NCBI GenBank assembly: GCA_047495785.1 | Contig: JBLDXI010000002.1 | Coordinates: 2,356,001-2,420,000 of the forward strand | Length of the DNA stretch: 64,000 bases | Direction of reading: 5' to 3' | Origin: Lepidodermella squamata | Lineage: Eukaryota > Animalia > Gastrotricha | Shown here: positions 331 to 53,781 of the stretch, one piece after another | Layout: each line of letters starts with the position of its first letter | Numbering within the stretch: the first letter of the stretch is position 1 | The notes under the pieces: model-generated | The model's input: only the letters and a program-made list of their open reading frames with translations | What the model was told of the DNA's origin: nothing | The model's database searches: none | Translations under genes and position numbers: made by a program

Positions 331-505
331 CGTCGTTGGATAACTTGAATTTGGGATTGTTTACTTCAGTTTTAAGGCGACAGGTGACGAATGAAAATTA
401 AGCTGTTTTGCCTATAAAAATTCACGAAAAAACCGCCTTATTTCTATTGTCACCTATCATCTTGAAACTGTCGTAAGCCAGCAAAAACCAGAGTTATTCA
501 ACGAC
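331..505. mobile_element. Degenerate MITE, same family as 7849-8085
   Basis: Imperfect inverted ends cgtcgttggataact.../...agttattcaacgacg. Confidence 0.5.
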
Positions 506-959
506 GGCAGCGTTATATTTAAAAGAAATGCCGAAGAAGAGCTAAAGTCGCAGCTCATTTGCTGATTAAAAATAAAATAAAATATGAAGTAAAATAACGG
601 CAAAAATAAATAAAAATTCCACCTTAAAATATGGCCTGCAATGTGTTAACTTAGCACAGCATTTTAACAACGCATCTAAGAAGGCAAGAAGCTAAGCTTT
701 TTTTAGTATGATGCGATAATATTACCACCTCTTTGTTAGCAATAAAATCGAAAAGTGACGGGGCAATAAAATCGGCTGGTAAAAGACGCTATGTGACCTA
801 ATAAAGCCGCGAAAACTGCACGACTTCGTCCACCACTGCCAAGGGTCTTTTCCAATAGCAAAAGCAAGCATGCTATCGTCGCATATCAATGAAATGAAAG
901 ATGATGTATGATTTGTTCTAGATCGCAAGTCGAAATTTGGAGACATTTTGTGGCAAAAA

Positions 960-1690
960 ATGGCCGGAAATCACCCAACGGGTAAGTCGGCCCTGCTAGA
1001 ATTTCAGTCAGCCTTGCAAAATTTTTAACTAGGTGACTTTGAAATCCTAAACTCGAAAAAACTGGGACCTTGTTCCGAGGTGAGATTATTCGTGGCTAAT
1101 TCTATTTATTCACCCCATTTTTTCGCTTTTTTTACAGCGTAACTCGCCGATTTTTCGTCCGATTATTGTAAAACTGGAACAAGTAACCACCGCGCGCAAC
1201 GTTAGTTTTTATATCTGATGTAAAATTGTGGTATAAACCAAACGACTAGGAGTCAACTAGGCTGCCGCTATTCGATGAATTCTATGGGAAAGAGTCACAA
1301 AAAGTTGAAGCTCCCTACACCAGCCCGATTTACTTGGGACCTATCAAGCCTGGCAGTGGAAATTTAGAACCAATCGACTTGGCATCCGTGAACCCAGTCA
1401 GCTCAAGCGAATCAAGCGTTTCAGAATTCTTCGACGATCTATCGCCGGCTAAAAAATCGCGGAAAAAGCCGAACGAAACAACCGAAACGCCACCCGATAA
1501 TAACCGCGGAAAAACTTTGGCAAAATGCAAAATTTGTGGACTCGATGTGCCGAAGCTCACTCTGATTTGTTTGCCGTGTTGCGATGGTCAGCCGACTTGC
1601 CTGCCTTGCATCATGCGGCTGGCTTCAATTCCAAACGTGCCACTTAAATGTCTTGCTTGCGGTTTCACTGAAATACTACCGAATTCTTGA
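960..1690 (+). CDS. RING-finger protein (LPCC-type), putative E3 ligase, 4 exons; 5' end uncertain
   Basis: Three short GT-AG introns join in frame to ORF 1334-1690: CKIC...LPCCDGQPTCLPC...CLAC. Confidence 0.7.
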
Positions 1691-1854
1691 TTTTAATCTC
1701 CTGCAAATTAAAATAAAACAAAAGCCGAAAAGCCTTTCATCTTTTTTATTGCCAATTTTTCCGGAAGTTCACGCGATTACAAGGTGTATTCATTGTTTCA
1801 AGGTCTCAGGGAAAAATCAAAAATTAATTGTCAGTGTCTTGAGAATTGTAATTT

Positions 1855-2744
1855 TCAGTCGAGGCGGGGTCGTTTCGACGACACGTCGCTGTGCATGACC
1901 AGTTTTCGGGGCGATGGGTGTTTCGGAAGAATGATAGCGAACTGGCAGGCGGTGCATTTGAGCGATGGCGGCTCATCGGTGCCCACGTGCTCGTTCCCAG
2001 CGCCGACTATGCACCATAAACAGGCGCGTACGTTGTTGCAGCAGGGCAGGTACAACATTGCAGTAGTCTGACGCGATTTTTGACAGAGGCCACACTCGGC
2101 AGAGATAGGCTTGTCAGTCGACGGTGATCCAAGGCTTGACGCATCATCACGAAAGGGCTAAAGAAAATAAACAAAATAATTGAACAAAAAATAATGAAAA
2201 ATGGCTCACCTTTAAGTCATCTGTTTGGTCACAGGTGAAGGGCATTGACCGCCGAGACTTGGGCACGTTCGAAATCGAGGTAGCGCTATTAGAACTGCCC
2301 ACCTTAAATTCATAAAAATCGTAAGAATTTTCAGGAAAAAAATCATGATTTTTATACCGGATTTCTAAAGCTGTATCGCCGGAATTTGGTCGAAGATGGC
2401 TGGTTTGGCGTTTTGGCGTATCGATCGTCGTTCATTGGTGCTAATTTCTGCTCGATTTTCAGAGTGCGGCGCAAATTTCCGTAAATTTCTGGCGGGATGC
2501 CGCTCGGGTAAATTTCGCGCAATTTCAGACATTTCACATCCTCGCCCTCGCCGCTGCCGTAAATGTGAGCACGTAGCCTGTCCTCAGGGACACTGGCGCG
2601 GCAGAACGGGCAGTTGAGAGGCGTCGAGCAATAGGCTGAACACGGCGTTTCATCGGAGCAGCAGCCGATTTTGTCGTAGGACCGCTTCCGGCTACTCGCC
2701 GTTGATAAATTGCTAGTCGAAGGGCTTTCGCTCGGCAGGGCCAT
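1855..2744 (-). CDS. C2HC zinc finger + C-terminal RING protein, 3 exons
   Basis: Exons 2744-2358, 2302-2210, 2157-1855, phase-0 GT-AG introns; CPFC-x11-H...C at the N-terminus; CGLC...LPCCNNVRACLWC...CTAC at the C-terminus. Confidence 0.8.
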
Positions 2745-3633
2745 GTTTTGAGTTTAAAGATAGCAGTATTTGAAATCGACCAATTTTACACTGGCTGCGG
2801 GGATTATTTTCGAATTGCGCGCCATGATCATTTTATTACAGGTAATAATTTCCGTGACATGTCAGTCGGCGGCGCATTTGTGAGTGCTATCAGGGCGCAC
2901 TAATTAATGACCGCCAATGCTCGACCTCGGCAAGACTTTGATCTAATGAGTGGTCTGCGTTAATTGCAGGCAAGATGCGCCTTTTTCAAACACGATTTTT
3001 CAGGCCGCGAAAATTTTGCGGTTTGAGAAAAAAATGCAAATTATTTTTTAAAATTAAGCTGTAAAATATTAAATATTCGGTTAACAAAATTCAAAATTAA
3101 TTGATTAATGAAAATTATACCATGGGCGATGAATTAAATATTTCATTTCACTACTTCTTTGATAATCAGATTCTCAGTTTTATTGGTTAAAAATTCAGTT
3201 TTTTCGCCTGTCGTTGATATCCGTTCAGGGCGCGGGGGTCGGCCGAGATTTGAAATTGTATGATGACATTTTTTGAAAATATATCGAGTTATCTCAAAAT
3301 TAACCCGATTGGACTCGGGACTTGTTGCCGTGCGCAAGCCAGACCAACTGGACCCAACCAACTGGGTAAACATAGGGTGAAGTGACCTAATTTTGCAAAA
3401 AACTGGTCACAGATTTTTGAAGCCATCGATATCGAAGGCCCTCGGTCATCGACAGCTCTTCTTTTGCCATTTGTAGGTGCCTTGAGTATTGAACTAAATA
3501 GCCCCAAAAGGAAATTTTCAAAAAGCTCACCATTGTGGCGCAACACCTGTCGCAAACAATCGCGCCACCGGTTTTGTAATTAAGAGCAATTGCCCCAATT
3601 ATGCAACGCATTTCGATTTTTCGGCCTAAACTG

Positions 3634-3887
3634 AGGTGCGTTTTTTATTAAAACCGTGGTGCTATTGTTCAGCGCTGTGATCAATGTTTCGGTGAGATTC
3701 GCAACAGAGGCGGCCAAATGTTCTTAATCCGCGCGGGGATTTGTCTTTTCTGACCGGCCTAGACAGCAATTCGAGCCGTTCAGTTCATGATAGACGTGCC
3801 GATTGTGATTTCTCTGTTGCGAATCTCACCGAAACATTGATCACAGCGCTGAACAATAGCACCACGGTTTTAATAAAAAACGCACCT
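3634..3887. mobile_element. MITE, possibly PIF/Harbinger type
   Basis: ~76-bp perfect TIRs (aggtgcgttttttattaaaacc...), flanked by 3-bp CTG duplication. Confidence 0.75.
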
Positions 3888-3966: not shown

Positions 3967-4734
3967 CCGTAACGTGTGGTGATTGTGGACACGGTAACTT
4001 TGGACACTTTCGGCTTTGCAGGTGTTTAGCTTTTCAGGCTTGAACGTTTAAATCATGGGGGTTTTTGCATAAAATTCTCCGTCTCCTCAGCTTTCGTTTG
4101 AAATAAAAATCAAGACGATTGGAGCTGAAATCGGATTTCAGAAAAAGTTGCAAGCAGTTAGACTTTGGGTGCCGTTTTGGGACCCCCCTTCTATCTTTCT
4201 AAAAATCAAACAGTTTTCAATAAAAATTGGCATGAGCATTCTCCTATATTTACTCTCCCTATAATCGAAGAAAAAATGACAATCCGTCGACGCGTTATAG
4301 CAGGACATTTACCTGAAAAACAGGTGAAAATTGGGGTAATTTTGGACACTTTTGGACGGGTTAAGTATGCTGCTGCGCAGAAACGTATTTTTATTGAACT
4401 TCCGAGAAACAGATGATGCGCCATCTGTTCATAATTTTTTTCGAAATCTGACCCAAGATTAAATGAAAAACCATGAATAACAGATAATTCACAATGAAAT
4501 TGCAATGAAATTGCATATGCAAATGAGTGTCCAAAACTACCCTCTAATTGTCCAGTTACCGGAACACATATTAATTAGCAAAAGGTCAGGTAAAATTCTA
4601 AAAATTTCTGGAATTTGAAGTAAATTCAAGAATGACCGTCCCCACCTTTGGTAAAAATTTCAGAAATTTAGAAGCAAAGGCTGATTTTTAATGTTCGAAA
4701 AACACGTTTTGTCCAAAGTTACCACTCGTTACGG
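3967..4734. mobile_element. Non-autonomous Tc1/mariner(pogo)-like DNA element
   Basis: TIRs ccgtaacg(t/a)gtggt, TA on both flanks, subterminal tttggacac repeats. Confidence 0.65.
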
Positions 4735-5622
4735 TAAGCATTCCACAAATAAGAAAACTAATAAATAAAAATTGAAATTGGTTTAAAAATTCCTCACGGA
4801 TCAAACGAGCTATGTCCAGGTCGCCGTTTTGAGGTCAATTTTCGGCCAGGCTAAGTCCACACAAAAAATGAACGCATCATAAAAATAAATGAACGTTTAT
4901 TGGCGTTTAAAAAAATTGAAAGACCGACCATTGAAAATGTGGTGTCTACGTGAAGAATCCAACCCCAGGCGCCGGCAAGGAATGTTTTCGCGCGAAAAAG
5001 GTCCGATGTCCATTTTTACCTGTGGCGCAAAAAGTACGAATTATACAGGGAAACGCCTTGCGTCATTCGAAAGAGCGGGGTCGACATCCTCTCCACCTCG
5101 TCTGTATGTAAGCCTTCAGTTTTTAGGTGCTTTGAAAATTTAAGGCCCCACGCTCATTTCGGGCAAGAATTGCTTAGCTAATGAGTGCCTGGGACACCGA
5201 ATACCACGTAATAAGAAATCAGGGAGAAAGATTTGCCCTTCTGATGGCGACGAATCAGACTTTTTACCTAGCTTCACCTCTAGTTCTACGTATTATATCA
5301 AATTAACACAAATTTAAAATAAAAACATAATAAAAACTCTGTATTCATTCGAGAAACGTCTAACATCAACAATTAGGACAAATCGATGAAATCGAATATT
5401 TAAAAAGGAACGATAGCAATGTACTATTGGAGGCTATTTGAGCGTGGACAAAACGTAGGTAGTATTAGGTACTATCTTTTATTTACGATTCACCCGAGAA
5501 TAATTATTAAAATCGAGAATAATCAGTTATTTTTATTTTATTTTTAAATCAGATACGCGGCATGGCAATAATGTTTCCACTACAGCTTTCCGCGTGTCGT
5601 TGATTTACCAATTCAAAGCCGC

Positions 5623-6288
5623 TCATGGAGCGGGTGTCGTCATGCTTGAAGGGTCGGCTTCGGCGCAAAATTGCTGCATCAGGTTTTGCACGAGGCTGCA
5701 TTTCTCGGATCCTTTCATCATCGCGTACGTCATTATGTTCTTTGGGGGCATCTGACCATTCCGACCTGGGCCCATGGGTCCTGGACCCATCGGACCCATC
5801 GGACCCATCGGAGGGCTGGCCATAGGTGCTTGCTGTCCCATAGATGGTTCAGGCCGAATGTACTGAGATCCCACAGCGCAGTTCGGCATACCGTTGCAGT
5901 TGCTGACGCCACAAGTGCAGGAGAACTGAAAATTTACATCCGAAGTGAACTAAATCGTATCAGAATTTTTAAATAATCGAACCGTGTCCGCAGTTGCACT
6001 TTGTGTGATTGTGATTGCCTGCTCAGCTGCATCTTGTTGTGGTCTGAATTGTTCACAAGTAAACATGACTGCAGCCATTTTTGTTGGGCTCTTGATAATT
6101 TGCTGGTCAATCTTGCAGAAGTCGCAGCCTGTCGCTGGTTTGACTCTTGGCGAGTGCTCGCTTGGGTCGACTGAAATCGTATCTGCGCCCGCAGCTACTG
6201 CGGTACCATTGAAGCATTGGATCTTCACTGCCTGAGCCATGCTGAGGCAGTAAGCTGCAACAACAATCAGACCAAGTTGCGCTTTCAT
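5623..6288 (-). CDS. Secreted three-finger/LU-like protein, subfamily A (A1), short GPM/GPGPM linker
   Basis: Signal peptide MKAQLGLIVV..., exons 6288-5983 and 5925-5623; CFNG, CDFC, CTCGVSNCN, KC-x10-C, ends TTPAP. Confidence 0.85.
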
Positions 6289-6717
6289 CTTTCGAAGGTT
6301 CGAAGGTTCAAAAATGCAAACGGAGAGTAAACTGGGTGAAATAACTATTAAAAATGACACCACACAACGCTGGGATTTTTCTGTTTTTTTTTGTGCCGCT
6401 TCTAACACAGTTTGCGCACGTTAATTATCTCGAATGTACCTGGTGTAGAAATTTCGTCCAGGCCTTCTTATCGTGTTGGTGTAGTTACATTCCAGCCTCT
6501 AGCCGAGCAAACACACGGCTGCCATCGATCGCTACTGGTGTAATTATCAGATGAAATTATGCTGGGTTCCAAGCGCTACTCAGCGTGCGTAGGCTAATTG
6601 CAGTCCGTTGACACAGCTTTTTCGAGATCAGCCACCATAGAATTTACCGTGCGCTGATAAAAAATCTCGCATTAGAGGCTTTTCGTTTTTGAAGCAACAT
6701 CATAATTTCGACTTGAA
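6289..6717. promoter_or_regulatory. Putative bidirectional promoter A1/B1
   Basis: ~430 bp between divergent ATGs; block gttgacacag...agatcagcc.ccatagaatttaccgtgcg...aaaaatctcgcatt also present at ~11125-11190. Confidence 0.55.
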
Positions 6718-7391
6718 ATGGCGGCATTTCAATTTGCCCTGGGTGTCTGTTTGATCGCAGCTTCTTACTTCCATGGATGCTTGGGTTTGATAATTGAGCA
6801 AATTTTTGCTTTGAAAATTCTTGAAAATAATTCGTACAGGAAACGTCTCTTGCTATGTTGGAACGATAAAAAATAATATAGTTTATGGCGGATCCCCGGA
6901 CCCAGCTGCCAATAACATCACGACGCAAGCCGGATGCGGTTCTTGCGCCCGTCTGATGTTAGCCGTCACCGGCAGTGGACTGACCTGGACTGATTTGTCC
7001 TGCAATCCGCCTGGCACCAATGAAATGAAACACATCATGATTATGCACACGCCGCTTTCAAGCCAGGTAAATAATTTGACGGTGAATTGGTCTTAAAGTA
7101 TTAATTAAAAATGGCATTTTACAGACTCTCTGTTACTGCACTGCTGACAAATGCAACCAGGACCCTCATTGTGGCATTGCTTCGCTTCTGCCCGCTTCGG
7201 TTAAGCCACCTGCGCCTGTGCCAGGACAAGACACGACGTCCGGCATCATTGGAATTGTTGCTCAGAAAGTCGGCGAAAAATGCCAAGCCCTATTTACGGC
7301 TGTCGTGCTTATGTGCCAAAACGTCATGGCGGCTGAAATGATGATGATGCAGTCACCGCCCGCTGGCAGGCCTAGCACACCGACTCCTTGA
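6718..7391 (+). CDS. Secreted three-finger/LU-like protein, subfamily B (B1)
   Basis: Exons 6718-6784, 6840-7066, 7125-7391; signal peptide, CYVG, CGSC, CYCTADKCN, KC-x10-C, MMMM, ends STPTP. Confidence 0.85.
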
Positions 7392-7848
7392 GCGACTTGA
7401 ATTCGAAGTTCATGACGGTATATTTTCGAAAGCTGTCCCGAATTTCATTGACATTCGAAAGCTAATAAAATGAGTGAACCATTTATTCAAAGTGAGCCAT
7501 TCTATCCCCATTATACATTATTTGAAGAACGACTTTTGATGAACCAAAAATCTAATGAGGTTCACCGTTGATGTCGAGGACGAAATCATAGCTTTATCAT
7601 AGATCCAAACTTACTTCGTGACAAGGCATAAATAAGCTAGAAATGCAAGCCATATTATTATTAACTTCAGGGAAATTCTTCATAATTATCTGCTACGTTC
7701 AAGCTTTTGTCATCAGCAAATAGTTTCGAAGTAACGTTTTCATCTGAAAAGCTGCTTATAGTGACCCAAAATTCTAGAATTCCCGTCCCTGACAAACATC
7801 AAGTGAATGTAATCCCGCTTTTTTGCTTAACATGTCTTTTACGCAGAC

Positions 7849-8085
7849 ATTTCGTTAGCGTCGTTGAATAACTCGGATTTGGGCTTGTTTACGAGTATTT
7901 TTATTGTTTACCCCCGACACAAATGACCTTTTGTTCGACCTACATTTTTACCGCCACCAAAGCGCCTTGGTCTTGCCGATGTTTTGATTTAGGTTGGACA
8001 AAACTTTACCATCGGATATATTATTACCGCCGGACAAGCATTTAAACAAGCCTAAATCCGAGTTATTCAACGACGCTAACGAAAT
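7849..8085. mobile_element. MITE
   Basis: ~43-bp near-perfect TIRs atttcgttagcgtcgttgaataactcggattt. Confidence 0.65.
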
Positions 8086-8209
8086 ACCTACCTATATATG
8101 CTTGCTGATATTTTTATTTCACTTCAAATTGGGATACAGGCAGACCTTCCGGACCCTTTCTGATGTTGCAACTTCAAAAACCTGTTGGAGATCGAACTCG
8201 AGGTCAAAA

Positions 8210-8345
8210 TAGTAAACGGTAGATGCTGCATGCTGCCGTCCTGACCACCAGGGTCGCCGGGACCCGCCGCCAACGCACCAGAAGCCGTCGGACTTGATTC
8301 CATCTGACCTATTCCCATTACACCGCCGAAAAAGGTTCCCAGCTG
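8210..8345 (-). pseudogene. Fragment of subfamily A linker
   Basis: ALAAGPGDPGGQDGSMQ resembles ATAAGPGGPPGADSSMP of gene 13540-14246; no signal peptide or Cys core. Confidence 0.45.
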
Positions 8346-8524
8346 TTCCCATTTTGTTCCCAGCTGAAAGTGTACAACAGCGAGATAAAAATACACGGAC
8401 TCCAATACATCCTCGCAGGGACCGTGGAAAAATGTGGCGGACGGTGGCGGAAAGTGTACAGCCATGAAGTAAACTATGACTGTATTATAGTTGAAATAAA
8501 AAATTGTGTAACAAATCTTATGTA

Positions 8525-8954
8525 TGCCGTAGTCTAATAAGGAATTTAGTTGGGTTGGGAATCCAACTAGTTAAATAGGCAATCAAACACATTACCTCCC
8601 TGTAGAGATGCTTAGGCATTGAACAACCAACTCAAATGATAGCGGCAAACGGTGTCAGAAATGCATTTTTAGGTATTTTGTGCCGTATTTCGATTTGGAA
8701 AATTAAATTTGTAAGGTGGAGTCATTGCACTCGCAGGGAACAGCGAGAGACAGAACAGCCAAGAAAACCACTCACGACCTTCTTCAGGGTTGAATTCTCA
8801 AAATTGTCGGTGAATTGCATAATAGTTTGCCATTTAATCCAAATGTTTGGCAAAGGATCCATTATTACAGGATATTAAACTAGTTTTTTGAGCAAATTGG
8901 CAAAAAAACAAGTTGGATTCCCAATCCAACTGAAGTTTTTACGAGACTACGACA
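8525..8954. mobile_element. MITE with 4-bp TSD
   Basis: Imperfect TIRs tg(c/t)cgtagtct...agttgg.ttgggaatccaact, TGTA on both flanks. Confidence 0.55.
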
Positions 8955-9005
8955 TGTAGAACAAAAAATAACTTAATCACGGCGAAATCGACTGATGTTG
9001 GCTCG

Positions 9006-9223
9006 AAAATGAAAAACCAGTCGCCTAATCCGACATGTTTCAGCTTTTATTCAGCCATCTTCAGGGTCTGACAACAAGTAAGGAAATCGACAATCAAGTT
9101 ACTTGTTGTCAGACCCTGAAGATGGCTGAATAAAAGCTGAAACATGTCGGATTAGGCGACTGGTTTTTCATTTTTGAGTCATAATTATGATATCGCTTTT
9201 CCATCAAATCCTACGACTAAAAA
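9006..9223. mobile_element. Penelope-like retroelement remnant (inverted pLTR fragment)
   Basis: 12-bp TSD gatgttggctcg (8994-9005, 9224-9235); 76-bp perfect inverted arms 9006-9081/9099-9174 carrying a hammerhead core. Confidence 0.7.
9114..9150 (+). ncRNA. Minimal type I hammerhead ribozyme motif (mirror copy on minus strand in the left arm)
   Basis: CC-CUGAAGA-U-GGCU(gaauaaa)AGCU-GAAACAUGUC-GG; palindromic ACAUGU at stem III; predicted cleavage after C9148. Confidence 0.6.
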
Positions 9224-10014
9224 GATGTTGGCTCGGTTACAATTTTCTGAAATTGAAAAATAAAGTACCGTACTGCCCGAAAATAATGCCAGCCTCGAAT
9301 AAATGGCAGCCTCAAATAAATGTCAGAGGTTAGAGGTCGTTCAAAAAAATAAATGTCAGGCCCGAAATAAATGTCAGGTCAGTGGCGGGAACAATACTGA
9401 AGACCACTAATGAGGTCGTTTTAGCCATTCTGATTGGATATAATTTCTACTCTTGGCACTTAGAAAGGTTAGGGGCCAACTTTTAAGATGGCGAAACAGA
9501 TGGCGAACGCAAACAATGGGTTTCACTTCCTTCCCTTGATCAAGACCTGCGGTTCCCTAATTCTGAGTGACTTCAAATTTAGGCATAACTCGAGGTAAAA
9601 TTGCCCGGACTTGCAGAAACCGGCATTTGATAGCCCGCAATAACACCACGAAGAACCTCTAGAATTCTGCGTTTGCAGATTTTCTTCTAAACACTTACGT
9701 GGCTTGGAAAGCGGCAAAAAAAACTCAAAAAGGTAGCAAATAGGACAGGGAGCTCTAATCGACGATACGATATGCCTGTTTTCATTCGAGAAAATTTCGA
9801 AAATGGTAGCGAAAAATGGGAAAAGGAACAATAGCCATGCGAAAGGCTAGCGTGGATAGAACGCAAGTAGTATTCGATATCATCCTTTATTACTCGAGAA
9901 AAATTAAAATTGACAATAATCAGTTATTATTTATAATTTTTATTATCAGATTCGCGGTATGGCAATGTTTCCACTACAGTTTCCCGCGTGTCGTTGATTT
10001 CCGATCAGAGCCGC

Positions 10015-10806
10015 TCATGGGGCGGGTGTCGTCATGCTTGAGGGGTCGACTTCGGCGCAAAATTGCTGCATCAGGCTTTGCACTAGGGTGCATTTCTCAG
10101 AGCCCTTCATCATCATGTACATCATCATGTTCCTGGCGGGCATCTGACCCATGGGTCCAGGGCCCATCGCATCTGGGCCCATTGGACCTGGACCCATCGG
10201 ACCAGGACCCATCATCATCCCAGGACCCATTGGACCTGGACCCATCGGACCAGGACCCATCGGACCAGGACCCATCGGACCAGGACCCATCGGACCGGGA
10301 CCCATCGGACCAGGACCCATCATCGGACCTGGACCCATCGGGCTCGCTCCAGCAGCCTGACCAGATGGCACGTACTGATTTCCCACTGCGCAGTTCGGCA
10401 TACCGTTGCAGTTGTTGACGCCGCAAGTGCAGGAGAACTGTAAATAAACATCTGCAATGAACTTAACCGCCTCAGAACCTTGTTCAATAAAACGAACCGT
10501 GTCCACAGTTGCACTTTTCGAGATTGAGATTGACTGCTCAGCGTCAACTTGTTGGGGCCGGAATTGCTGACAGCTGAAACCGACGAAAGCCATTTTATTA
10601 GGGCTCTTGATAATTTGCTGGTCAATCTGGCAGAAGTCGCAGTCTCCCACTGGTTTGACAGTCGCTGAGTGCACGCTTGGGTCGACTGAAATCGTATCTA
10701 CGTCCATAGCTTGCACGGTTCCGTTGAAGCACTGGATCTTCATTGCCTGAGCCATGCTGAGGCAGCAAGCTGCAACAACTACCATACCAACCACTTGAGC
10801 TTTCAT
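10015..10806 (-). CDS. Secreted three-finger/LU-like protein A2 with long GPGPM repeat
   Basis: Paralog of A1; exons 10806-10498 and 10437-10015; 10 exact GPGPM plus 2 variants; ends TTPAP. Confidence 0.88.
   Translation of the reverse strand: MKAQVVGMVVVAACCLSMAQAMKIQCFNGTVQAMDVDTISVDPSVHSATVKPVGDCDFCQIDQQIIKSPNKMAFVGFSCQQFRPQQVDAEQSISISKSATVDTVRFIEQGSEAVKFIADVYLQFSCTCGVNNCNGMPNCAVGNQYVPSGQAAGASPMGPGPMMGPGPMGPGPMGPGPMGPGPMGPGPMGPGPMGPGMMMGPGPMGPGPMGPDAMGPGPMGQMPARNMMMYMMMKGSEKCTLVQSLMQQFCAEVDPSSMTTPAP
10146..10340 (-). repeat. 15-bp coding tandem repeat (GPGPM)
   Basis: ggacccatcggacca-type units on the + strand. Confidence 0.9.
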
Positions 10807-11235
10807 TTTTCGTTCCAAGTTTCAAAAATGCAAACTGAGAAGAAATAACGATTTAGAATGACAGCAATACAGGGCCGGGATTTTTTTCTGTGAGTTGGCG
10901 CTTCCAAGAAGAAGAATCTCGAAAGTCGCACGTTATTTATTATCGAAATGTACCTGATGACACGATGGAAATCTCGCCCAGGCCTGCTCATCGTGCTGGC
11001 GTGGTTGAATTCCACAACTTCAAGCTGGCCGTGCACACGGCTATCATTGACTCGCTGTCTAATGAGTTGTTTAATGCCAAACACCACTTATGAGAATAGC
11101 AGCGTCAGCTAATTGCCGTAGTAGGTTGACACAGATTTTTCTAGATCAGCCGCCATAGAATTTACCGTGCGGTGAAAAAATCTCGCATTTGAGTCTTTTA
11201 ATTTTTGAAGGTAGCAACAACATTTCGAGTTTGAA

Positions 11236-11909
11236 ATGGCTTCATTTCGGTTCGCCTTAGCTGTCTGCCTGCTTGCAGCTTCTTACTTCCAAGGATGCCT
11301 GGGTTAGATATAATTAATTGAAAATACTTTCGTGCTGTAATTTCGAATTCTATCGAACAGGTGAAATTTCCTGCTATATTGGAACAATAAACAATAACGT
11401 TGTTTATGGCGGAAACCCGGACCCAGCTGCTAATAATATATCAATAGCGGCCGGATGCGGCTCCTGCAACCGTCTGGGTTACATGGGATCTGGTACGATG
11501 CGGACTGAATTCAGCTGCGCGCCGCCTGGCATGGAGATCAACTCCATCAAGATTATTCACACACCGCTTTCAAGCCAAGTAAATAATCTCAAGTAATTAA
11601 TTCACATTTATTAATTTGCCACATGATTAACAGGTGGTCTGCTACTGCACTGCTGACAAATGCAACCTGGACCCGCAATGTGGCCATGCTCCCCTTCTGC
11701 CTGATTCGGTGAAGCCGCCAGCGCCCGTTTCGGGGCAAGACGAGGCGTCCGGCATTATTGGAAAGGTTGCCCGGACACTCGGCGATAAGTGCATGGCTCT
11801 ATTCACGGCTGTCACGCTTGTGTGCCAAAACGTCGTGATGGGTGAAATGATGATGCAGGCACCACCCGCTGCTGCTGCTGGCATGATGCCAAGCACACCG
11901 GCTCCTTAA
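11236..11909 (+). CDS. Secreted three-finger/LU-like protein B2
   Basis: 3 exons as in B1; CYIG, CGSC, CYCTADKCN, KC-x10-C, ends PSTPAP. Confidence 0.85.
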
Positions 11910-12087
11910 GCAAAGCCCAGAATTCAACGTTCCCGACGATATTTTTCCGCCCGCAATAGACATGCCATTGAGTTTTGAGTGCTATAATAAAATTCAGTGA
12001 ACAAAATAAGCCATTCCATTCTCAATTCGACATTTTTGGAACATCTCGGAGCATGTTGAAATTGAATATAGGCGCTTTATTGTCACA

Positions 12088-12570
12088 ACGAGTGGTCAGA
12101 CTTTTCAGCAGTGATACTTCAGCAAATGAGGGTCAAACCAGCAGTGACTTTTCATCCGTGACACATTGTCAGTAAAAAATCCATAAAAATCAAATTTTTG
12201 TATTAATTTAAATAATTCTTGCAGACAAGTGAGCAGTGACATTTCAGCAGCGACAAATGAGCAAATGACACTTCATCAATTTTCATTCATTTATCTCGGG
12301 CATTGAACTTGCACTTTTTGAGCTCAACTTCAATGCAGCGCATAGTCACCCTGCTGAATACGGCTGAAATTCTGTTGATGAAATGTCTCTGCTGAAATGT
12401 CACTGCGCAAATGTCACCAAGATAAAGATAAAAAAATTGGAAAAATTATCAAAAATCACTGCTGACTTGTCACTGATGATTTGTCACTGTGCAAATGTCG
12501 CAGCTCAAATGTCAATGCTCATTTGACCCTCATTTGCTGAAATGTCACTGCTGAAAAGTCGTACAACCGT
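12088..12570. mobile_element. MITE with internal short repeats
   Basis: Inverted ends gacttttcagcagtga...cagcaaatgagggtcaaa; many aaatgtcactg units; exact ends approximate. Confidence 0.65.
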
Positions 12571-13539
12571 CATAGCAACAGTTGCCAGGTTACCAACAAA
12601 CATATTCTCTATTCTTCCTGTGAAAATCTTGAAGATTCGAAAAATACTGTATGAGCAGTATAAAACAGCGACATTTCAAGCTATACGATGTAGGTCATAG
12701 GGCCAGGCAATGTAATAGCTATTTGTTCGCTTTTTTCATTAGGCTTTGAGACAAGTTTTTCGAAATTTCACGTCTAGTCGTCAAGCTGCCAAGTTCCCAA
12801 TGCTATTAAATGAAACTGTGCCCCAAATGAGTTTCCTAGGAGAATAAGCACTGGAAAAGGTGTTTCGGTTATACTTGAAATTCCGCATTTTTTGCCTGTA
12901 AAACGTGTCTCATACAGACGTGTTGAATGTTTTGAATACTGTACAATGATAATCAGAAGTTTCGCACGGTCAGGAATTTGCCGAGTCAAAACAAAAAAAA
13001 ACATTTTTTGCCCCAAAAGTTTGGGTTCATCTTTTAGCCAAAAATACTCATAAATTGCAATAGGTTGAAAAATGTGAGTATTCATATTCACAATATTCAT
13101 AATATTCAGATATTCATCAAACTTATAAAATTTGTTGAAGAAATTAAAAAAATGGTTTCGATTTATTCTTATCTTTTACACTAACTGCTTATAATTCCTT
13201 CTGGATTTTCTTGCGCGGGGCTAAACATGTCCTAGATTAAAGACATCTCATTACCATATTCAATTTCTTAAAAATCATTCTACTATAATTTTAGCTTTTT
13301 TTAGGGATCGAATATTGACCAGCCTTTCAATTTGTTTCTCTTTGAATTTCGATCTGAGATATATCCATACCATCTGAACATATATTTTCTGAAAGCACTT
13401 CGCTGGTTTCGCGTAATTTTTTGTATTTTTTATTCTCATTTCAGCTATACATGAATACTAAAAAACGATAGGTATTATAATTTGGATCAGTTCAACTCAA
13501 GTTATAATTAAGGAATTGCGAATTCTAGGCTGTAGACAA

Positions 13540-14246
13540 TTACGGGGCAGGTGTCGACATAGCGGCGAAAAATGAGGGGTCGATTTCCGTGCAAAACTGC
13601 GACATAGTGAGCTGCACAAGGGAGCATTTGTCCATAGTCTTCATCGTCATGAATTGCATGGCGGCAAATGGCATGCTGCTGTCCGCACCAGGAGGGCCGC
13701 CGGGTCCCGCTGCCGTCGCACTTGAGTCCGCCGGACCTGGCCCCATCGGTCCTGGACCCATCGGACCTGGACCCATTGGACCTGGCCCCATCATCGGGTT
13801 CGGCCCGTTCGGAGCTGGTCCTGTTGGCATGTACTGGCTTGTGACGCCGCAAGCCGTCACGCCGTTGCAATTGTTGACTCCGCAAGAGCATGAGACCTTA
13901 TAAAGGGAAAATTATTTGGTTTTAATCAGATGATTTCGTAAATGAATACCTGATCGACTTCGGCACTTTTTGATATAGTGTACGTCTGTTCGGCTTCAAC
14001 CTGTTGGGGGCGGAATTTTTCGCAGCTGAAACTAACCAGCGCCATGGGGCTGATCTTCATAATTTGATGTGTGAAAGTGCAGTAGTCGCAGTTGTCCTCG
14101 GTCTTGACAGTCGCCGATAATTCGGCCGGGTTCGTCGATATCGTAGTAGATCCTTCAGCCTTGGCGGTTCCCGAGAAGCAAGTGATGCCGGCTTGAGCGA
14201 CTCCGAGGCAACACGCAACAACGACGAGACACATTTTGAACTCCAT
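13540..14246 (-). CDS. Secreted three-finger/LU-like protein A3 (GPGPM x3 + GPGPA)
   Basis: Exons 14246-13950 and 13896-13540; CFSG, CDYC, CSCGVNNCN, KC-x10-C, ends STPAP. Confidence 0.85.
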
Positions 14247-14566
14247 TTTTCAGCTGGAAAAATTGAAGCGAAAATAAACAGAATGAATATCAGTGGATAA
14301 GATCTTCTTCTTGTTTTGTTCGACCGCGCGAAAAAATGCAAATTTAAAAGGGTGCAAATTCGCGCAGGTGGGGTTCAATGTCGCTTTTATTGCCTGCAAT
14401 TAAGGTTTAAAAGTTCGGTAAATGTTGGCACTTTCAGGTTTAGGGCTGGCCATAAATTTGAAAAAATTGTTTCTGCTCGTCAGGGGTATGGGATAATTCT
14501 AAAACCCAGCTACATTTTACATCATTTTTTCATTTGAGCCTGCTAGTAATTTTGGAAAACTGTAAC

Positions 14567-15224
14567 ATGGTTTCAATTCAAGTTGCTGTCGGGATTTGCT
14601 TGATAGCTGCATTCAACGCATGCTACGGTTGGGATTGAAATATTCCCATTAAAGAATTTAAAATTATTTCACAATTCAACAGGCGATATCGCGTGTTACG
14701 ATGGGATGATTAACAAGAATATTCTATTTGGCAAATCTCTGGACCCTGTTGCCAACAATTTGACTGTCCGCACCGATTGCAAGGTCTGCCAGCGCACGAA
14801 TGTCGCCTACGACAGTGGTATGCAGGCATCTATGTTCAGCTGTCAAGTTTTCGGAGCAATCGCCAACTCCACCACGATTATTCATACGTCGCTATCGACA
14901 CAGGTTTTTATTTTTTTTAAATTATCGGCGAAATTTAAATTTTTAAATAATTAGAACATGTGCACTTGTACGACTGATAAATGCAACCAGGAATTGCTTT
15001 GCGGCAATGTGGAAAATCTGCCTGAGCAGATCAGACCCCTGCCTAAACCTGCCTCCAGCGGTCCTGAGGGCGCCGGCATTCTCGGGGTGATCGCCACAAA
15101 AGCAGGCGAAAAATGCCAAGCTTTGACAACTGCGATTCAATTTTTGTGCCAGGGCGCAATGATGGCTGAAATGGCTGCTATGATGATGCCAGCTGCTGGT
15201 GGACCATCTACACCTGCACCTTAA
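14567..15224 (+). CDS. Secreted three-finger/LU-like protein B3
   Basis: 3 exons; MVSIQVAVGICL signal; CYDG, CKVC, CTCTTDKCN, KC-x10-C, ends PSTPAP. Confidence 0.85.
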
Positions 15225-15677
15225 TTATCACGACTTCCAAGAAATTAACCCGAAAATTCAAGAAAATTATCGTTTTTATTAGTTTTAATAAAAATCGCTG
15301 ATAGGCCAAAGGTGCTGTTTTGACCATTTCTACCAGCGAAAACCGAAGGTTCGATATCTGTGGAGAGCGATGCCTCGGAACAATTAGACTGAGATTTTCC
15401 CAATTTTTCCGAAAATAGAGTTAGCGAAAATGAAAGGGTACATCAACTGCCTTAAATTTGCATTCTTTAGATATTATGAGCTTTCACCTCCCGAAAAACA
15501 CTTTAAAAGGGTGATAATTCGCGCAGGCGGAGTTCCATCTCGCTTTTATTGCCATAGTAATGATAATGATGCCTTAGTTCTGAGGCTGATGTGTCGAATG
15601 ATGGCCATAAAAAATTGTGAAAAAACTCATGCTCAACTTTTACATGTTACCAGTGAATAATTTAGGATTTTTTTTAA

Positions 15678-16520
15678 ATGGTTTCTATGAAAGCTGCTGT
15701 CGCAGTTTGCTTGGTGGTTGCCTCGGCATTCATTGCATGCTACGGTAAAATGGGCAGCGCGGAGGTTGGGTCATTAATTCTAGACTAAATCCAACAATAA
15801 TCAATTTTTTGTTAACATTTTCACATTTTTCAAATTTAATTAATTTTGCGCAAAATCTTACGGTGAAATTCTAGTAAAGCTGAGCCAATCGATTGTACAT
15901 CGTAATTATCCGACCCTACCTCCGCCACCTAATCGGGATTAAAATATTCCCATTTGTGATATTGTTTAATCCTAAACAGGAGATATTCCTTGCTACAGCG
16001 GTTATGTCAGCAATAATGTTCTCTATGGAGGTTCTCTAGACCCTGTTGCTAACAATTTGACTGTCCGTACCGATTGCAAGATCTGCCAGCACACGACTAT
16101 CGCTTACGACAGTGGCATGAAGTCATCCATGTTCAACTGCCAAGTTTTCGGAGACATCGCCAACTCAACCACGATTTATCATTTTCCATCATCGACACAG
16201 GTTTTCATTCTTATTAATCATATCGAAATAACATAAAATTGAACATTTCAAACTAGATTGCTTGCAGCTGTTCGACTGATAAATGTAACCAGGACCTGTA
16301 CTGCGGCAATCTCGAACTCCTGCCTGAACAGGTTAGACCCTTGCCGAAGCCCGCCTCCCAGGGACCTGAAGGCGCCGGCATTCTCGGGGTGATCGCCACG
16401 AAACCAGGCGAAAAATGCCAAGCCTTATCAACTGCACTTCAATTGTTGTGCCAGGGCGCTATGATGGCTGAAATGGCTGCTTTAATGCCAACTGGTGGAC
16501 CCTCTACGCCTGCGCCCTAA
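15678..16520 (+). CDS. Secreted three-finger/LU-like protein B4 (tandem copy of B3)
   Basis: 3 exons; intron 1 enlarged by a ~180-bp insert with imperfect inverted ends; CSCSTDKCN; ends PSTPAP. Confidence 0.8.
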
Positions 16521-16733: not shown

Positions 16734-17330
16734 ATGTTAAAAAAAATTGCGGCATTGATAGCGATTTTTTCAGCCTTTGGCTTCGCGAATGCTGGGCTCA
16801 AGTGCCATGTAGCTCAGGTGACCGGGAAGAGTGCGAACTATCTCCCGACGCCAGGGGACAATGCGTTCACCCAAGAGGACAACTGCGACTTTTGTTCACG
16901 GACCATGACCCAGTTGGGCCAGTTTGTCAGCCTCGTCTTCGGCTGCGGCAAAGCAGGTTCGCCTAGCCAAGAGTGCGATGAAATGATGATGGTCACCAAT
17001 GATACAGCAAATAACAGGCGCCAGGTTAAATAAAAGCTGAAATTCCCGGAATGATGAAATTTTGCGTTTTTTTAGTTTGTTTGCAAGTGTTGTGGCGAGT
17101 TGTGCAATGGATTTTCGAATTGCTCGTTGAGCATGGGCAATCGGCAACCGCCAGCGGCGATGGGTGCGACTACAGCGAGCCCTCCAATTAGCTGGGCTAA
17201 TGCAGCCATCAACCGACTGCCGGTGGCTTCCAGGTGCTCGATGACTTTGCTTTTAATGAGCCAAATGTGCGCGGAAATGGGCTTGCGCGAGAACAGCACC
17301 ACTACCATGAGCAGCGGCAGCAAGCGCTGA
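16734..17330 (+). CDS. Secreted three-finger/LU-like protein (12-Cys type)
   Basis: Signal peptide; intron 17025-17075; CDFC, CKCCGELCN, RC-x10-C. Confidence 0.85.
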
Positions 17331-17881: not shown

Positions 17882-18480
17882 ATGTTTAACAAGATTAGCG
17901 CTTTGATAGCGATTTTTTCGGTCTTCGGCTTCGCGAATGCCGGGCTCAAGTGCCATGTTGCTGAGGTGAGCGGGAAGAGTGCGAACTATCTCCCGACACC
18001 AGGAGACAGGGCTTTCACTCAACAGAACAACTGCGACTACTGCGAACGGACCATGACTATGGTAGGCACCTCTGCCAGCATCGCCTTCCGTTGCGGCAAG
18101 TCAGATGCGCCTGCTGGCGAAGGCTGCAGTGAAATGATGATGGTCAACAAAGTTGCCGAGCAAAGCCTGACCCAGGTAACAATACCCTAAAGCCGCCATG
18201 ATTGTTTAATAAAACTCGCGTCTTTTAGTTCTCGTGCTCGTGTTGTAACGACCTGTGCAATGGAGTCTCGAATTGCACGATGGGAATGGGCCGTAATCGA
18301 CCAGCGGCGATGAGTGCGACTACGGCGAGCCCTCCAATCAGCTGGGCCAATACGGTTCTCAACCGAATGCCGACGGCTGACAGGTGTATGATGACTGTGT
18401 TCTTACTTAGCCAAATGTGCCAGGATATGGCCTCCCGCGAGAACAGCACCACTACTATGTCCAGTGGAAGCAGGCGTTGA
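17882..18480 (+). CDS. Secreted three-finger/LU-like protein (12-Cys type), tandem paralog of 16734
   Basis: MFNKISALIAIF signal; one intron; CSCCNDLCN, RC-x10-C. Confidence 0.85.
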
Positions 18481-19042: not shown

Positions 19043-19726
19043 ATGTCGCGAATGGCAATAATAGCGATTGGCCTTGCCGTGGCCTCTTTTATTCAATCAT
19101 CTTCAGGTAATAGCTAGAATAACTCAGCTAAATTTTGCTTAATTTTCATATATTAATAGCCTTGTCATGTTATGCCGGTAGCGTCATGATCTATACGGCG
19201 TACGGCGGGCAAATGGACCCAGCCAAAATTCAAAACGTCACCCTTAAAACCAGCTGCAACGCTTGCTCACGGACTTCGGCGAATGCTATTCAAATGGGAT
19301 ATATGAGCATCCAATGGGGCTGCGATGAAAACCCAGGCAACGTTGCTAATACCGGCGCCACTTGCGCCAAAATGGTGCAAATGGGCCGTAGCAAAGGCTC
19401 GGTAAATTAAAAAACAAATATTTTCAAAGAATATGAGTTAAAATTTTATTTTTATTTAATTTCAGTCCACAAACGTGTGTTACTGCTGCGCAGACAAATG
19501 CAACGGGCAAATGAACTGCGGAAACGAGGACATGTTGCCAGCTGGAATGATGATGCCGCGCCCTATGAACAGCACCCGTCCTTCGATGATGATGATGGGC
19601 GAGCCTGGCGCCGGCTACATGGGCATGGTTGCTGATACCGATTACAAGAAATGCATTGCGTTAACCGGGCTTCTTAACTCTGTTTGCACTGAACTGCAAC
19701 CTAATGGCAAGCCGACGACGCCCTAG
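19043..19726 (+). CDS. Secreted three-finger/LU-like protein (12-Cys, Met-rich linker)
   Basis: 3 exons; CYAG, CNAC, CYCCADKCN, MMM/MMMM runs, KC-x10-C. Confidence 0.83.
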
Positions 19727-19951: not shown

Positions 19952-20443
19952 ATGGTTAAATTAATTCTTATTTTCGTCCTTGCTTTTTCCGTTGCTGTTG
20001 GTCGCTCGAGTGGCCTGACTTGCTACAGCGGCGAGGTGTCGTCGATGACGAGCTCATCGATTTCGAGCAATCCGAAAGACCACGGCAGCCAGATTAAGCA
20101 GGAAAGTAGCTGTACGTACTGCGCACGAACAATGAGCGCCTCTGCATATCCGCAATCTTTTTCGGCAATTAATTACGAATGCGGGAAAAGCACAGACGCT
20201 TGCGCCAACACGATCATGGTCAACTCGATTGGGAAACCCAGCAATACGACACAATTTAGCTGCCAATGCTGCTCGGACAATTGCAATGGAGAGGCTGGAT
20301 GTCGCGTTAAATTAGGATCTAGCGTTTCAACAGGCACCGCAGCTCCGGCTCGTTCGGCGTCGGAAAAGTGCGAAAATGCCATTAAGCTGGTTGATCAGCT
20401 ATGTTCTTCCATCAAGCACTCGTCGAATTCAACCGCTAATTAA
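19952..20443 (+). CDS. Secreted three-finger/LU-like protein (12-Cys), intronless
   Basis: Single 163-aa ORF: signal, CYSG, CTYC, CQCCSDNCN, KC-x10-C. Confidence 0.88.
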   Translation: MVKLILIFVLAFSVAVGRSSGLTCYSGEVSSMTSSSISSNPKDHGSQIKQESSCTYCARTMSASAYPQSFSAINYECGKSTDACANTIMVNSIGKPSNTTQFSCQCCSDNCNGEAGCRVKLGSSVSTGTAAPARSASEKCENAIKLVDQLCSSIKHSSNSTAN

Positions 20444-20512
20444 AAGAATAACACTTTAAAATAATAAAACTCCCTTATAACGATTTTAAATTAATTTTTA
20501 GAATTTTTAAGG

Positions 20513-21101
20513 ATGCTATCCTTTTTGGTCATCTCTACGTGTTTAATCGGCGCAAATGGTGAACATATTTTGAAATTTTATTAATTAAAATTAAAAGATT
20601 CCCACAGCTCTCTCGTGCTACGACGGCTTTGTCAACGCGGCGTCGATAACGGAGTTCAACCCAGCCAAATACACCGCTGTGACTCTGAAACCGAACTGCA
20701 ACGCCTGTTCCAGGACTTTAGTCAAGGCCGCCAAGTCTTCGCTGCTTTGGAAATGCGACGCTGAGCCTCACAATGTGGTGAACACTGGCGCAACTTGCGG
20801 CAGAATGTTACAGTCGAATCGGTCGCCTACATTCGACCAGGTTCAATAGCTTCAATTTTTAGTTGATAAATAGGTTTCGAGTTTTAATTTTTTTTTCATA
20901 CAGGCTGTTTGCATTTGCTGCTCTGACAAGTGTAATGCGCTTGAAAATTGCGGTAATGAAGAGCTGTTACCCGCGGTTTTCAGCTCAACTGCAACGGCCA
21001 GCTCGAATCAGACTACTACACCACAGTCGCCGTCTGAGTTGTGTTCGGCTGCCCAAGAGGCACTGAAAGGAGTTTGCAGCGACCTTAAGCCGAAACTATG
21101 A
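20513..21101 (+). CDS. Secreted three-finger/LU-like protein (12-Cys)
   Basis: 3 exons; CYDG, CNAC, CICCSDKCN, LC-x10-C. Confidence 0.8.
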
Positions 21102-52322: not shown

Positions 52323-53003
52323 ATGCTGACTTTTTCGCTTTTATTAACGTTTTTCCTGACCTTCGAGGATATTTCTGGTAAGATTCGATCTATTCGGTGA
52401 ATTTTAAACTTGGATGATGTTAATAGCGATGAGCTGCTACAATGGCACCGCGCAGATAATGGGAAGCAGGATCCCGCCGAGTGATCCAGGAACTGTTGGC
52501 GATAGTGTCAAACTTGTTTTCGACTGCGATTTCTGCTCGGTCTAAAATACTGAAAATTTATTTCTATCATTTATCGTTTACTTTTACAGATAACGAAGAG
52601 TATAGCCAAGGTTCCTATCGACTACGCCGCCGTTCAATGGCGATGTGAAAAGTTCGTACCGGCATCGGATGGAACTGAAAACGAATGTATGAAGTACTTC
52701 ATGACAAGCAGTAATTCGAAAGTTGAACAGGTGCGGAATCGTTGAATCAACTTTCGCCCGGGAAATGACCGTTTTTTGTTTGCAATAATATAGATGGCTT
52801 GCCAATGTTGCGAAGACAATTGCAACCAACATCCGAGTTGTAATAACGCCCCAGCCGGTGCAGTTGTCGCCAGTCCAGTTTTGACGGCAAACAATCCGAT
52901 GTCGCCGCACTGCTACTACATGGCCAGCCAGATCAACCAATTTTGCCAGAATATTGACAAAATCAACCTACCAAAGCCGACCAGCTCGCCATCTAGCCGT
53001 TGA
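52323..53003 (+). CDS. Secreted three-finger/LU-like protein (12-Cys), 4 exons
   Basis: Signal, CYNG, CDFC, CQCCEDNCN, HC-x10-C. Confidence 0.8.
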
Positions 53004-53100: not shown

Positions 53101-53781
53101 ATGTTCTCTAAAACTGTCATTTTTGTCTTAGCTGTCCTATCAATTTGTGTAAGAGTGACCGGTGAGGAATTTGTTGAAAATAAAAGCTTGAGGTGTAATT
53201 TCTTATCTATAGATGAACTTTCCTGCTTCGATGGATCGGCTCAGGATACAGGCTTTTTCGATGTCACCCAAGATCCTGGTTCGCTTGGTGTCGAGCTAAA
53301 GGAAGATTGCGACTATTGTTCAGTAAGTGAACCAACCTCGAGGCTGTTTTATACATACCATTAATAAGGTGGTCAAGACTGAAACTACGAAACCTGGGAA
53401 AAGCTACGTCATAGCGTGGCGATGCGAAACATTTGACGAAGCCGCGGAGCAAAAACAGTGCTTCAATTCGATAACAATCAGCCAGCTATCAAGCCTGCAA
53501 CAGGTATATTAGGATCCATCCAGCTTAAACAAATTACGACTCGTTCATTTAATTTCAAGTCATTGTGCCAATGTTGCGTTGATCAATGTAACTCGTCGAT
53601 TTTTTGCGACTTGATGCCAACTTTGGCGTGTTCTGGAGCACCGGGTGGTGGGAACACCACAATTGGCGAGGCTACGCTTGAATCCCTCACCAAATCACTG
53701 AAATGCCAGTTTCTCGCTGCTCAACTGGCAATCACTTGCGAACGATTGGAAACATCAAACGGAACCATTCCTTTCACTTGA
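53101..53781 (+). CDS. Secreted three-finger/LU-like protein, 4 exons
   Basis: Signal, CFDG, CDYC, CQCCVDQCN, KC-x10-C. Confidence 0.8.

Follow-up and report, generated by a model that had tools for sequence, protein, structure and literature searches.

The window analysed here is the stretch of 64,000 nucleotides at positions 2,356,001 to 2,420,000 of one contig of the Lepidodermella squamata genome assembly (G000:C2:2356001-2420000, the contig being referred to here as C2; the assembly comprises 121 Mb in 151 contigs). It contains a cluster of genes encoding proteins that combine a cysteine-rich domain with a Pro/Gly/Met-rich linker and a two-cysteine tail, and most of these genes lie next to a gene of a second class of the same family. 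The reading that we favour, with a probability of roughly 0.45, is that this is a lineage-restricted family of Ly6/uPAR (LU) domain proteins encoded in co-duplicated two-gene modules, and that the genes of each module are driven together and their products form a disulfide-locked heterodimeric binder resembling the secretoglobins.

Seven genes with short GT..AG introns are found between 5.6 and 16.5 kb of the window (Table 1). They include three divergent pairs, each with a class I gene (A) on the minus strand opposite a class II gene (B) on the plus strand. The start codons are at 6288 and 6718 for A1/B1, 10806 and 11236 for A2/B2, and 14246 and 14567 for A3/B3, leaving ATG-to-ATG spacers of 429, 429 and 320 bp, respectively. 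The original prediction, which was made from the letters of this DNA, had described three head-to-head pairs of one A and one B gene at the same places. Introns of the A and B genes in the window are 51-58 nt long, with the exceptions of one of 60 nt in A2 and one of 235 nt in B4. In A1, the first exon codes for the signal peptide and the fingers, and the second codes for a CxCGxxxCN motif, the Pro/Gly/Met linker, the C-x10-C tail, the TTPAP end and the stop codon.

The gene models are supported by one RNA data set (X1), which consists of the assembled contigs of a single run and whose RNA nature is confirmed by splice joints, a SMART oligo and poly(A). Contigs of X1 skip exactly the predicted introns at 11303-11360 in B2, 13897-13949 in A3, 14628-14682 in B3 and 15745-15979 in B4, and loose contig ends span the second introns of B2 and B3. 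A3, B2, B3 and B4 are therefore all spliced within this one data set, and the A1 splice site is homologous to the A3 joint seen in RNA. In B2, the SMART template-switch oligo is joined at 11191/11192 and the poly(A) tail at 12006. Few X1 contigs fall on B4, and contig depth in X1 is not a valid basis for ranking expression levels. The A2 intron (10438-10497) is in frame and free of stop codons, so that the whole gene can be read as one open reading frame (ORF) of 267 aa, and this ORF, including the intron, was the one used in searches. If retained, the intron would add 20 residues ahead of the last strand of the LU domain.

The family extends well beyond the A and B genes. Searches by tblastn in the window and six-frame searches of the genome show that the cluster continues past B4 to approximately 21.1 kb with C1, C2, D1, E and F, that a distant member, H, lies further on in the window, and that further pairs are present on contigs C15, C24, C66 and C9. 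B4, the genes from C1 to F, H and four additional head-to-head pairs on other contigs had not been part of the original prediction. Using a profile of the last exon (E <1e-5), the genome-wide census returned exactly 21 tail-bearing genes, on C2, C9, C15, C24 and C66. These fall into class I (A, C, E and I7) and class II (B, D, F, H and II7), and the split has 96/96 support in the tree of the finger exon and again in that of the last exon. Exon structure follows class, as the signal peptide has an exon of its own in class II and shares an exon with the fingers in class I. No stop codon interrupts any copy and the ratio of nonsynonymous to synonymous substitution rates (dN/dS) is 0.2-0.6 in most comparisons, finger exons included; judged by their sequences, all copies look functional and moderately constrained.

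A gene of the opposite class adjoins 18 of the 21 genes. Seven class I/class II pairs, spread over five contigs, are head to head (A1/B1, A2/B2, A3/B3, A5/B5, A6/B6, I7/II7 and C3/D2), and four of these are outside the contig of the window. Two further pairs, C2-D1 and E-F, are in tandem with the class I gene leading into the class II gene, and B4, C1 and H are unpaired. The spacers of the head-to-head pairs measure 231-882 bp with the sole exception of A5/B5 on C15, where 5.4 kb separate the two genes. This spacer holds a non-long terminal repeat (non-LTR) retrotransposon of the long interspersed nuclear element (LINE) type, at 3990-8473 of locus L001 (G000:C15:2316000-2325999), with ORFs of 530 aa and 967 aa, the second of which includes an APE endonuclease and an RVT_1 reverse transcriptase. 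The A5/B5 spacer has thus grown from a few hundred bp to its present length because the retrotransposon inserted.

That the pair was duplicated as a unit, as originally proposed, is borne out by the divergence of the partners. The more alike two class I genes are, the more alike are their class II partners (pairwise identities, Pearson and Mantel r 0.75, permutation p 1e-4), and synonymous divergence (dS) is alike in the two partners, at 0.42-0.55 for A1-A2 and 0.42-0.55 for B1-B2. The mirrored divergence and the equal dS identify the module, and not the single gene, as the unit of duplication, back to identities of 13-30 %. On these sequence comparisons, the two-gene module was duplicated as a unit at least eight times.

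In spacers 1, 2 and 5, two blocks are better conserved than the remaining spacer, one central and about 65 bp long, the other B-proximal; the spacer of pair 3 keeps only fragments of them. Beside the A5/B5 retrotransposon the central block is doubled (L001 8738-8802 and 8869-8933). RNA from A3 reaches 14286 and RNA from B3 starts by 14519, so the 5' ends of the two transcripts are at most about 230 bp apart, which indicates a compact divergent promoter region. A scan of the spacer for bacterial promoters and terminators found nothing, although such a scan is not relevant to animal DNA, and Rfam identified no RNA family in the window. We infer that the compact spacer drives both genes together as a bidirectional promoter. 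The shared promoter proposed in the original prediction is in keeping with this compact 5' region and with the central block found in three spacers, but it cannot be universal in the family, given the tandem pairs and the single genes.

All family proteins have the same order of parts, namely a signal peptide (in A1, ...SMAQA before VKIQC), a cysteine-rich domain ending in CxC(C/G/T)xxxCN-x4-C, a Pro/Gly/Met-rich linker, a C-x10-C segment and a hydrophilic end. A and B are distinct in sequence, yet, as had been noted, the mature chains share ten cysteines (8 + 2) in identical order, Met-rich tails (8-20 % Met) and closely similar ends, which are TTPAP, STPAP or STPTP throughout A1-A5 and B1-B5. 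TPxP is a preferred acceptor site of the transferases that start mucin-type O-glycosylation with N-acetylgalactosamine (O-GalNAc), and the terminal (S/T)TPxP of the derived pairs is a likely site for this modification. The linker of A2 contains 12.7 copies of a 15-nt unit (GPGPM); A3 has 4.1 copies and A1 has 3.3 copies of a 9-nt unit. No linker repeat is found in the older pairs A6/B6, I7/II7 and E/F. Met makes up 6-20 % of the linker and tail in A1-A5, B1-B5, C and D and 0-4 % in A6/B6 and E/F. Partners agree in the Met-richness of the tail in eight of the nine pairs, which represent only about five independent lineages.

The number of cysteines likewise agrees between partners. By alignment to E, A and B lack one cysteine of finger 3 and the second C of the CC doublet, equivalent to one core disulfide fewer than in the 12-Cys members. 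The 10-Cys state is found in each of the two classes but never in only one partner of a pair, and the state (10 or 12 cysteines) agrees in 9/9 pairs.

All 21 proteins end in hydrophilic residues (e.g. TTPAP, STPAP, SSGSKR and NSTAN) and have no hydrophobic stretch at the C-terminus, which indicates that they are not anchored by glycosylphosphatidylinositol (GPI). The family proteins are predicted to be secreted, as they start with a signal peptide and their hydrophilic ends are not of the GPI type. A hydrophobic GPI-type end, which is absent from the 21 family members, is present in canonical LU genes of the same genome (contig C18, locus L006). L006 (G000:C18:128000-135000) contains, at 480-3850, a cluster of canonical LU domains (CxCCxxxCN) in which one frame runs from domain to domain and the ends are hydrophobic and of the GPI type. 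These genes are probably multi-LU and uPAR-like, and their N-terminal cysteine pattern, a single Cys with CxxC about 25-40 residues on, is the unusual one of the family.

The original prediction called the products secreted three-finger-like proteins and suggested a structure search as the check on the fold. Structure was modelled for E only, and A and B are tied to E by an alignment through all conserved cysteines and by tblastn (E 2e-8). A first model of full-length E, from a poor alignment, had a predicted local distance difference test score (pLDDT) of 65.9, and only its first 70 residues hinted at an LU domain (Z 3-4). The LU domain of E alone, modelled with a cleaner alignment of paralogues, reached a mean pLDDT of 89.5 and a predicted template modelling score (pTM) of 0.79. 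When this model was compared to 48,161 chains using VIA-align, the best matches were TEX101 (Z 8.5, 86 residues aligned, root mean square deviation 2.5), CD177 (8.4) and GPIHBP1 (6.5), with Lypd6b, C4.4A, Lynx1, AMHR2, TbRII and uPAR next, and the first 31 rows all belonged to the three-finger superfamily, irditoxin (2h7z, Z 4.3) and kappa-bungarotoxin among them. Foldseek returned the same families, the best match being C4.4A (probability 0.97), with the weak E-values that small disulfide domains usually give. In the Atlas, the template modelling score (TM-score) by query was 0.66 to LYPD5 and CD177, and clusters of Quiver, sleepless and phospholipase A2 (PLA2) inhibitors came next. The nearest neighbours in language-model embeddings were Activin_recp, UPAR_LY6, Toxin_TOLIP and CD59. 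On the model of E, the core of the family is an LU/three-finger domain, and the three-finger description therefore stands alongside the signal peptide and the absence of a GPI-type end read from the sequence.

The CN motif with its Asn is kept throughout, as CxCCxxxCN in C, D, E, F and H and as CxC[G/T]xxxCN in A and B, which have eight domain cysteines. However, the spacing within the motif is three residues and not the four of CCxxxxCN, and the CC doublet has been lost in A and B. A Pfam scan of eight family ORFs or exons found no LU-type model (UPAR_LY6, Toxin_TOLIP, QVR or Activin_recp) at E up to 1, and a family profile found nothing relevant among PDB sequences, so that membership of the LU group is read from the fold and the motif only. 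Matches in Pfam to New_glue (E 0.019, over the signal peptide) and SelO (E 0.19) are at the level of chance. Homology searches with A and B were run exon by exon. In a word-based protein search, A2 gave only low-complexity (GPM) matches and E gave none. An exhaustive hidden Markov model (HMM) search with the family profile against 1.84 billion representative proteins found a single relative, P0032 (E 4.6e-6), which is an LU-like protein of 128 aa without the tail, from a metagenome contig of 511 bp that offers no context. This protein set holds no close relative of the animal, as the best matches of its HSP70 reached 75-78 % identity with named animals, which were scattered over bivalves, a barnacle and a tardigrade, and 83 % with a single metagenome protein. 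A mitochondrial COX1 is absent from the assembly. In the literature on Ly6/three-finger proteins and on head-to-head or heterodimer genes, modules of this kind were not found described. The original view that the architecture is not that of a described family is not borne out as worded, since the core is an ordinary LU domain and what is unusual is limited to the tail and the paired layout. The fold is known, whereas the tail and the strictly paired arrangement of the genes are new.

The proposal of a heterodimer starts from the tail, in which C-x10-C is invariant in 21/21 proteins. In the full-length E model the tail forms a helix at residues 136-158 (pLDDT 54-70). If the tail is helical, cysteines 11 residues apart are on the same face of the helix, and this is the hydrophobic face in all 21 proteins, with the hydrophobic moment at 335-53 degrees and the cysteines at 40 and 60 degrees. 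With this geometry the two tail cysteines cannot bond each other, and a partner surface packed against the helix is needed. As the finger domains have even numbers of cysteines, a second tail helix would be the simplest bonding partner. Under the reading that we favour, the short spacer would drive the class I and class II genes together and the products would act as a pair, most likely as a heterodimer. Its two tail helices would lie against each other with their hydrophobic sides, and two disulfides between the chains would hold them together. Joined in this way, the LU domains would serve as a rapidly diversifying extracellular binder or signal and not as bulk material. A stronger version would make the two classes obligate partners, with one disulfide-stapled LU heterodimer from each bidirectional module, with partners that co-evolve through shared disulfide loss and gain of Met-rich tails, and with the whole acting as a three-finger counterpart of mouse androgen-binding protein (ABP) and Fel d 1, probably in fast-evolving recognition of mates, self or pathogens. 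We regard this version as possible, though less likely than not.

Several points weigh against the dimer and the shared promoter, and the pairing may be a matter of history only. In that case, a block would have been copied by segmental duplication, and the products would be monomeric secreted LU ligands or modulators, such as SLURP-1, Lynx or the salamander pheromone plethodontid modulating factor (PMF), with the C-x10-C cysteines bonded within one chain or stapling the tail to its own domain. Mirrored trees would also be expected from block duplication alone, with no interaction between the products. A shared promoter cannot be a general property of the family, with C2-D1 and E-F in tandem and B4, C1 and H unpaired. 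Most known secreted LU proteins are monomeric. The tail helix was predicted at pLDDT 54-70 only, and in this model the tail cysteines could instead close a loop within the chain. The complex prediction for the A1 tail (last-exon residues 58-100) with the B1 tail (residues 34-88) gave no answer, as its interaction score (ipSAE) of 0.03 counts neither way. The X1 contigs cannot show correlated expression levels, tissue or stage. Parallel loss of a disulfide in A and B is likely but not proven, as the 10-Cys state could still have arisen once according to an approximately unbiased (AU) test (p 0.08 for the finger exon and 0.48 for the last exon). However, a purely historical pairing has to account for class I/class II adjacency being kept in all but three of the genes, down to such low identities, on five contigs and with short spacers. 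It also has to account for joint shifts in cysteine state and Met-richness in partners, and for two tail cysteines on the hydrophobic face of the predicted helix, where they are ill-suited to an intrahelical bond. We consider pairing by history only to be quite possible, and continue to favour co-driven genes with heterodimeric products.

The original prediction also offered a two-component secreted material (glue, cocoon, cuticle or venom). A bulk material of A and B (glue, cocoon, cuticle or egg coat), with GPGPM as an elastic spacer and cysteines cross-linking a polymer, draws on the low-complexity Pro/Gly/Met linkers with their 15-nt repeat of up to 12.7 copies, on the high word depth of RNA contigs over B2, though such depth is not a valid ranking, and on the two cysteines of one helix face, which could in principle join chains into a polymer. 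However, the repeat is short, varies in copy number (about 13, 4 and 3) and is missing from A6/B6, I7/II7 and E/F, and a globular binding domain makes up more than half of each protein. The dN/dS of 0.2-0.6 over the finger exons reflects moderate purifying selection, as expected for binding proteins, and neither the Pfam scan nor the profile search of 1.84 billion proteins found a relation to known structural families. The case for glue, cocoon or cuticle is therefore weak, and we consider a bulk material improbable. Membrane-anchored Ly6 proteins of the GPI type, for which the paired layout would be incidental, are suggested by the LU genes of C18 (L006), which combine hydrophobic GPI ends with the N-terminal cysteine pattern of the family. 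With every family member ending hydrophilic and without a C-terminal hydrophobic stretch, we give this reading hardly any weight.

Like the family, secreted LU proteins such as SLURP-1/2, together with the structural matches TEX101, CD177, GPIHBP1, C4.4A and Lynx1, have a signal peptide and genes in tandem clusters, and their three-finger fold (Z up to 8.5) has a disulfide core that ends in C(C)xxxCN. The family differs from them in that it is not matched by the Pfam LU models, and the usual CxxC after the first Cys is missing, with a CxxC about 28 residues later. It also has an extra cysteine pair around the CN motif, one core disulfide fewer in A and B, and no GPI signal. To our knowledge, a linker followed by a C-x10-C helical tail is not a feature of LU proteins.

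Heteromers of two paralogous three-finger proteins are known. Irditoxin and other dimeric three-finger toxins, PLI-gamma A/B and TEX101-LY6K are covalent or non-covalent hetero-oligomers of this kind, and we know of no description of irditoxin, PLI-gamma or TEX101-LY6K as a bidirectional gene module. Irditoxin is linked via one extra cysteine inside the finger domain and not via a separate helical tail. PMF belongs to the secreted, fast-evolving, multi-copy three-finger pheromones of salamanders and has an altered disulfide pattern; it differs from the family in being monomeric and in having neither a tail module nor a paired gene layout. Cat Fel d 1, with its chains 1 and 2, is the same kind of parallel as the Abpa/Abpbg genes of mouse ABP.

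In gene layout, mouse ABP comes nearest to the family, although the analogy is functional and not one of homology. ABP is a secretoglobin whose alpha subunit is disulfide-bridged to beta-gamma, and the Abpa and Abpbg genes form 5'-5' modules that duplicate as modules (PMC8525912). Paralogous subunit genes placed 5'-5', modular duplication, small secreted products, quick expansion in a lineage and few singletons are common to both systems (PMC8525912). The differences are the unrelated fold (all-helical in secretoglobins and three-finger here), the spacers (5-20 kb in ABP and 0.2-0.9 kb here) and the status of the heterodimer, which was shown for ABP and is only proposed here. Structure searches with E, by recovering the three-finger fold, rule out that the family members are themselves secretoglobins.

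Table 1. Family genes and A/B spacers in the window, by position in the 64,000-nucleotide stretch
Feature	Description	Position	Strand	Details
A1	Class I	5623..6288	-	Exon 1 5983-6288; intron 5926-5982; exon 2 5623-5925
Spacer, pair 1	Putative bidirectional promoter	6289..6717	.	429 bp; conserved central and B-proximal blocks
B1	Class II	6718..7391	+	Signal-peptide exon 6718-~6784; finger exon ~6840-7066; last exon 7125-7391
A2	Class I	10015..10806	-	60-nt intron 10438-10497; GPGPM repeat 10146-10341
Spacer, pair 2		10807..11235	.	429 bp; B2 transcript start ~11192
B2	Class II	11236..11909	+	Introns 11303-11360, 11579-11633; poly(A) site ~12006; RNA joints
A3	Class I	13540..14246	-	Intron 13897-13949; RNA contig extends to 14286
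Spacer, pair 3		14247..14566	.	320 bp
B3	Class II	14567..15224	+	Introns 14628-14682, 14904-14954
B4	Class II, tandem copy of B3, without A partner	15687..16520	+	Introns 15745-15979, 16201-16256
C1	Class I, 12-Cys type (CxCCxxxCN)	16734-17330	+	
C2	Class I, 12-Cys type (CxCCxxxCN)	17882-18480	+	
D1	Class II, 12-Cys type	19043..19726	+	Met-rich linker; in tandem after C2
E	Class I	19952..20443	+	Intronless; 163 aa; the member folded
F	Class II	20512..21101	+	In tandem after E; first-exon position approximate
H	Distant class II	53101..53781	+	Same C-x10-C tail

Other sequences related to the family or adjacent to it are listed here as observations. Two copies of E that end just past the LU domain, at 3090-3461(-) of locus L005 (on G000:C13) and at G000:C150:1364-1726, are 123-124 aa long with 68-69 % identity. 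Upstream of these tail-less copies is a fragment of a D-type last exon, and the arrangement suggests that part of the D1-E junction was copied segmentally and lost the tail. Gene G (52423-52900(+)), which adjoins H, is LU-like (CQCCEDNCN) with three exons and is not matched by the C-x10-C tail profile. Between B2 and A3, at 12020-12570, is a short interspersed repeat with a word depth of 5,000-10,000x in DNA run X2, compared to about 60x nearby; it has many variant joints and looks like a very abundant element resembling a miniature inverted-repeat transposable element (MITE). An uninterrupted ORF of 1668 aa at 40392-45398(+) is that of a Ty1/copia-type LTR retrotransposon, with gag, a Pol beta-barrel domain, integrase and RVT_2. 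In the region 54242-63561(-), C-type lectin exons are found at 54242-54769, 57037-57657 and 62992-63561, and a weak kringle match (E 2e-6, under the Pfam cut-off) at 58512-59075. These matches suggest that another group of genes for secreted proteins adjoins the LU cluster.

The LU/three-finger domain is one of the binding scaffolds that animals have reused most often outside the cell, in toxins, receptor modulators, sperm proteins and complement control. The family adds to this repertoire a tail module that was not found described, and its strict two-gene layout has been passed on through at least eight duplications. Even if its products act singly, the family is a clearly delimited orphan expansion that escapes public protein sets and Pfam altogether. 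If they do pair, it would offer a clean natural example of modules that evolved convergently with those of the secretoglobins, a compact bidirectional promoter that matches the expression of two genes, and new heterodimeric three-finger binders to draw on.

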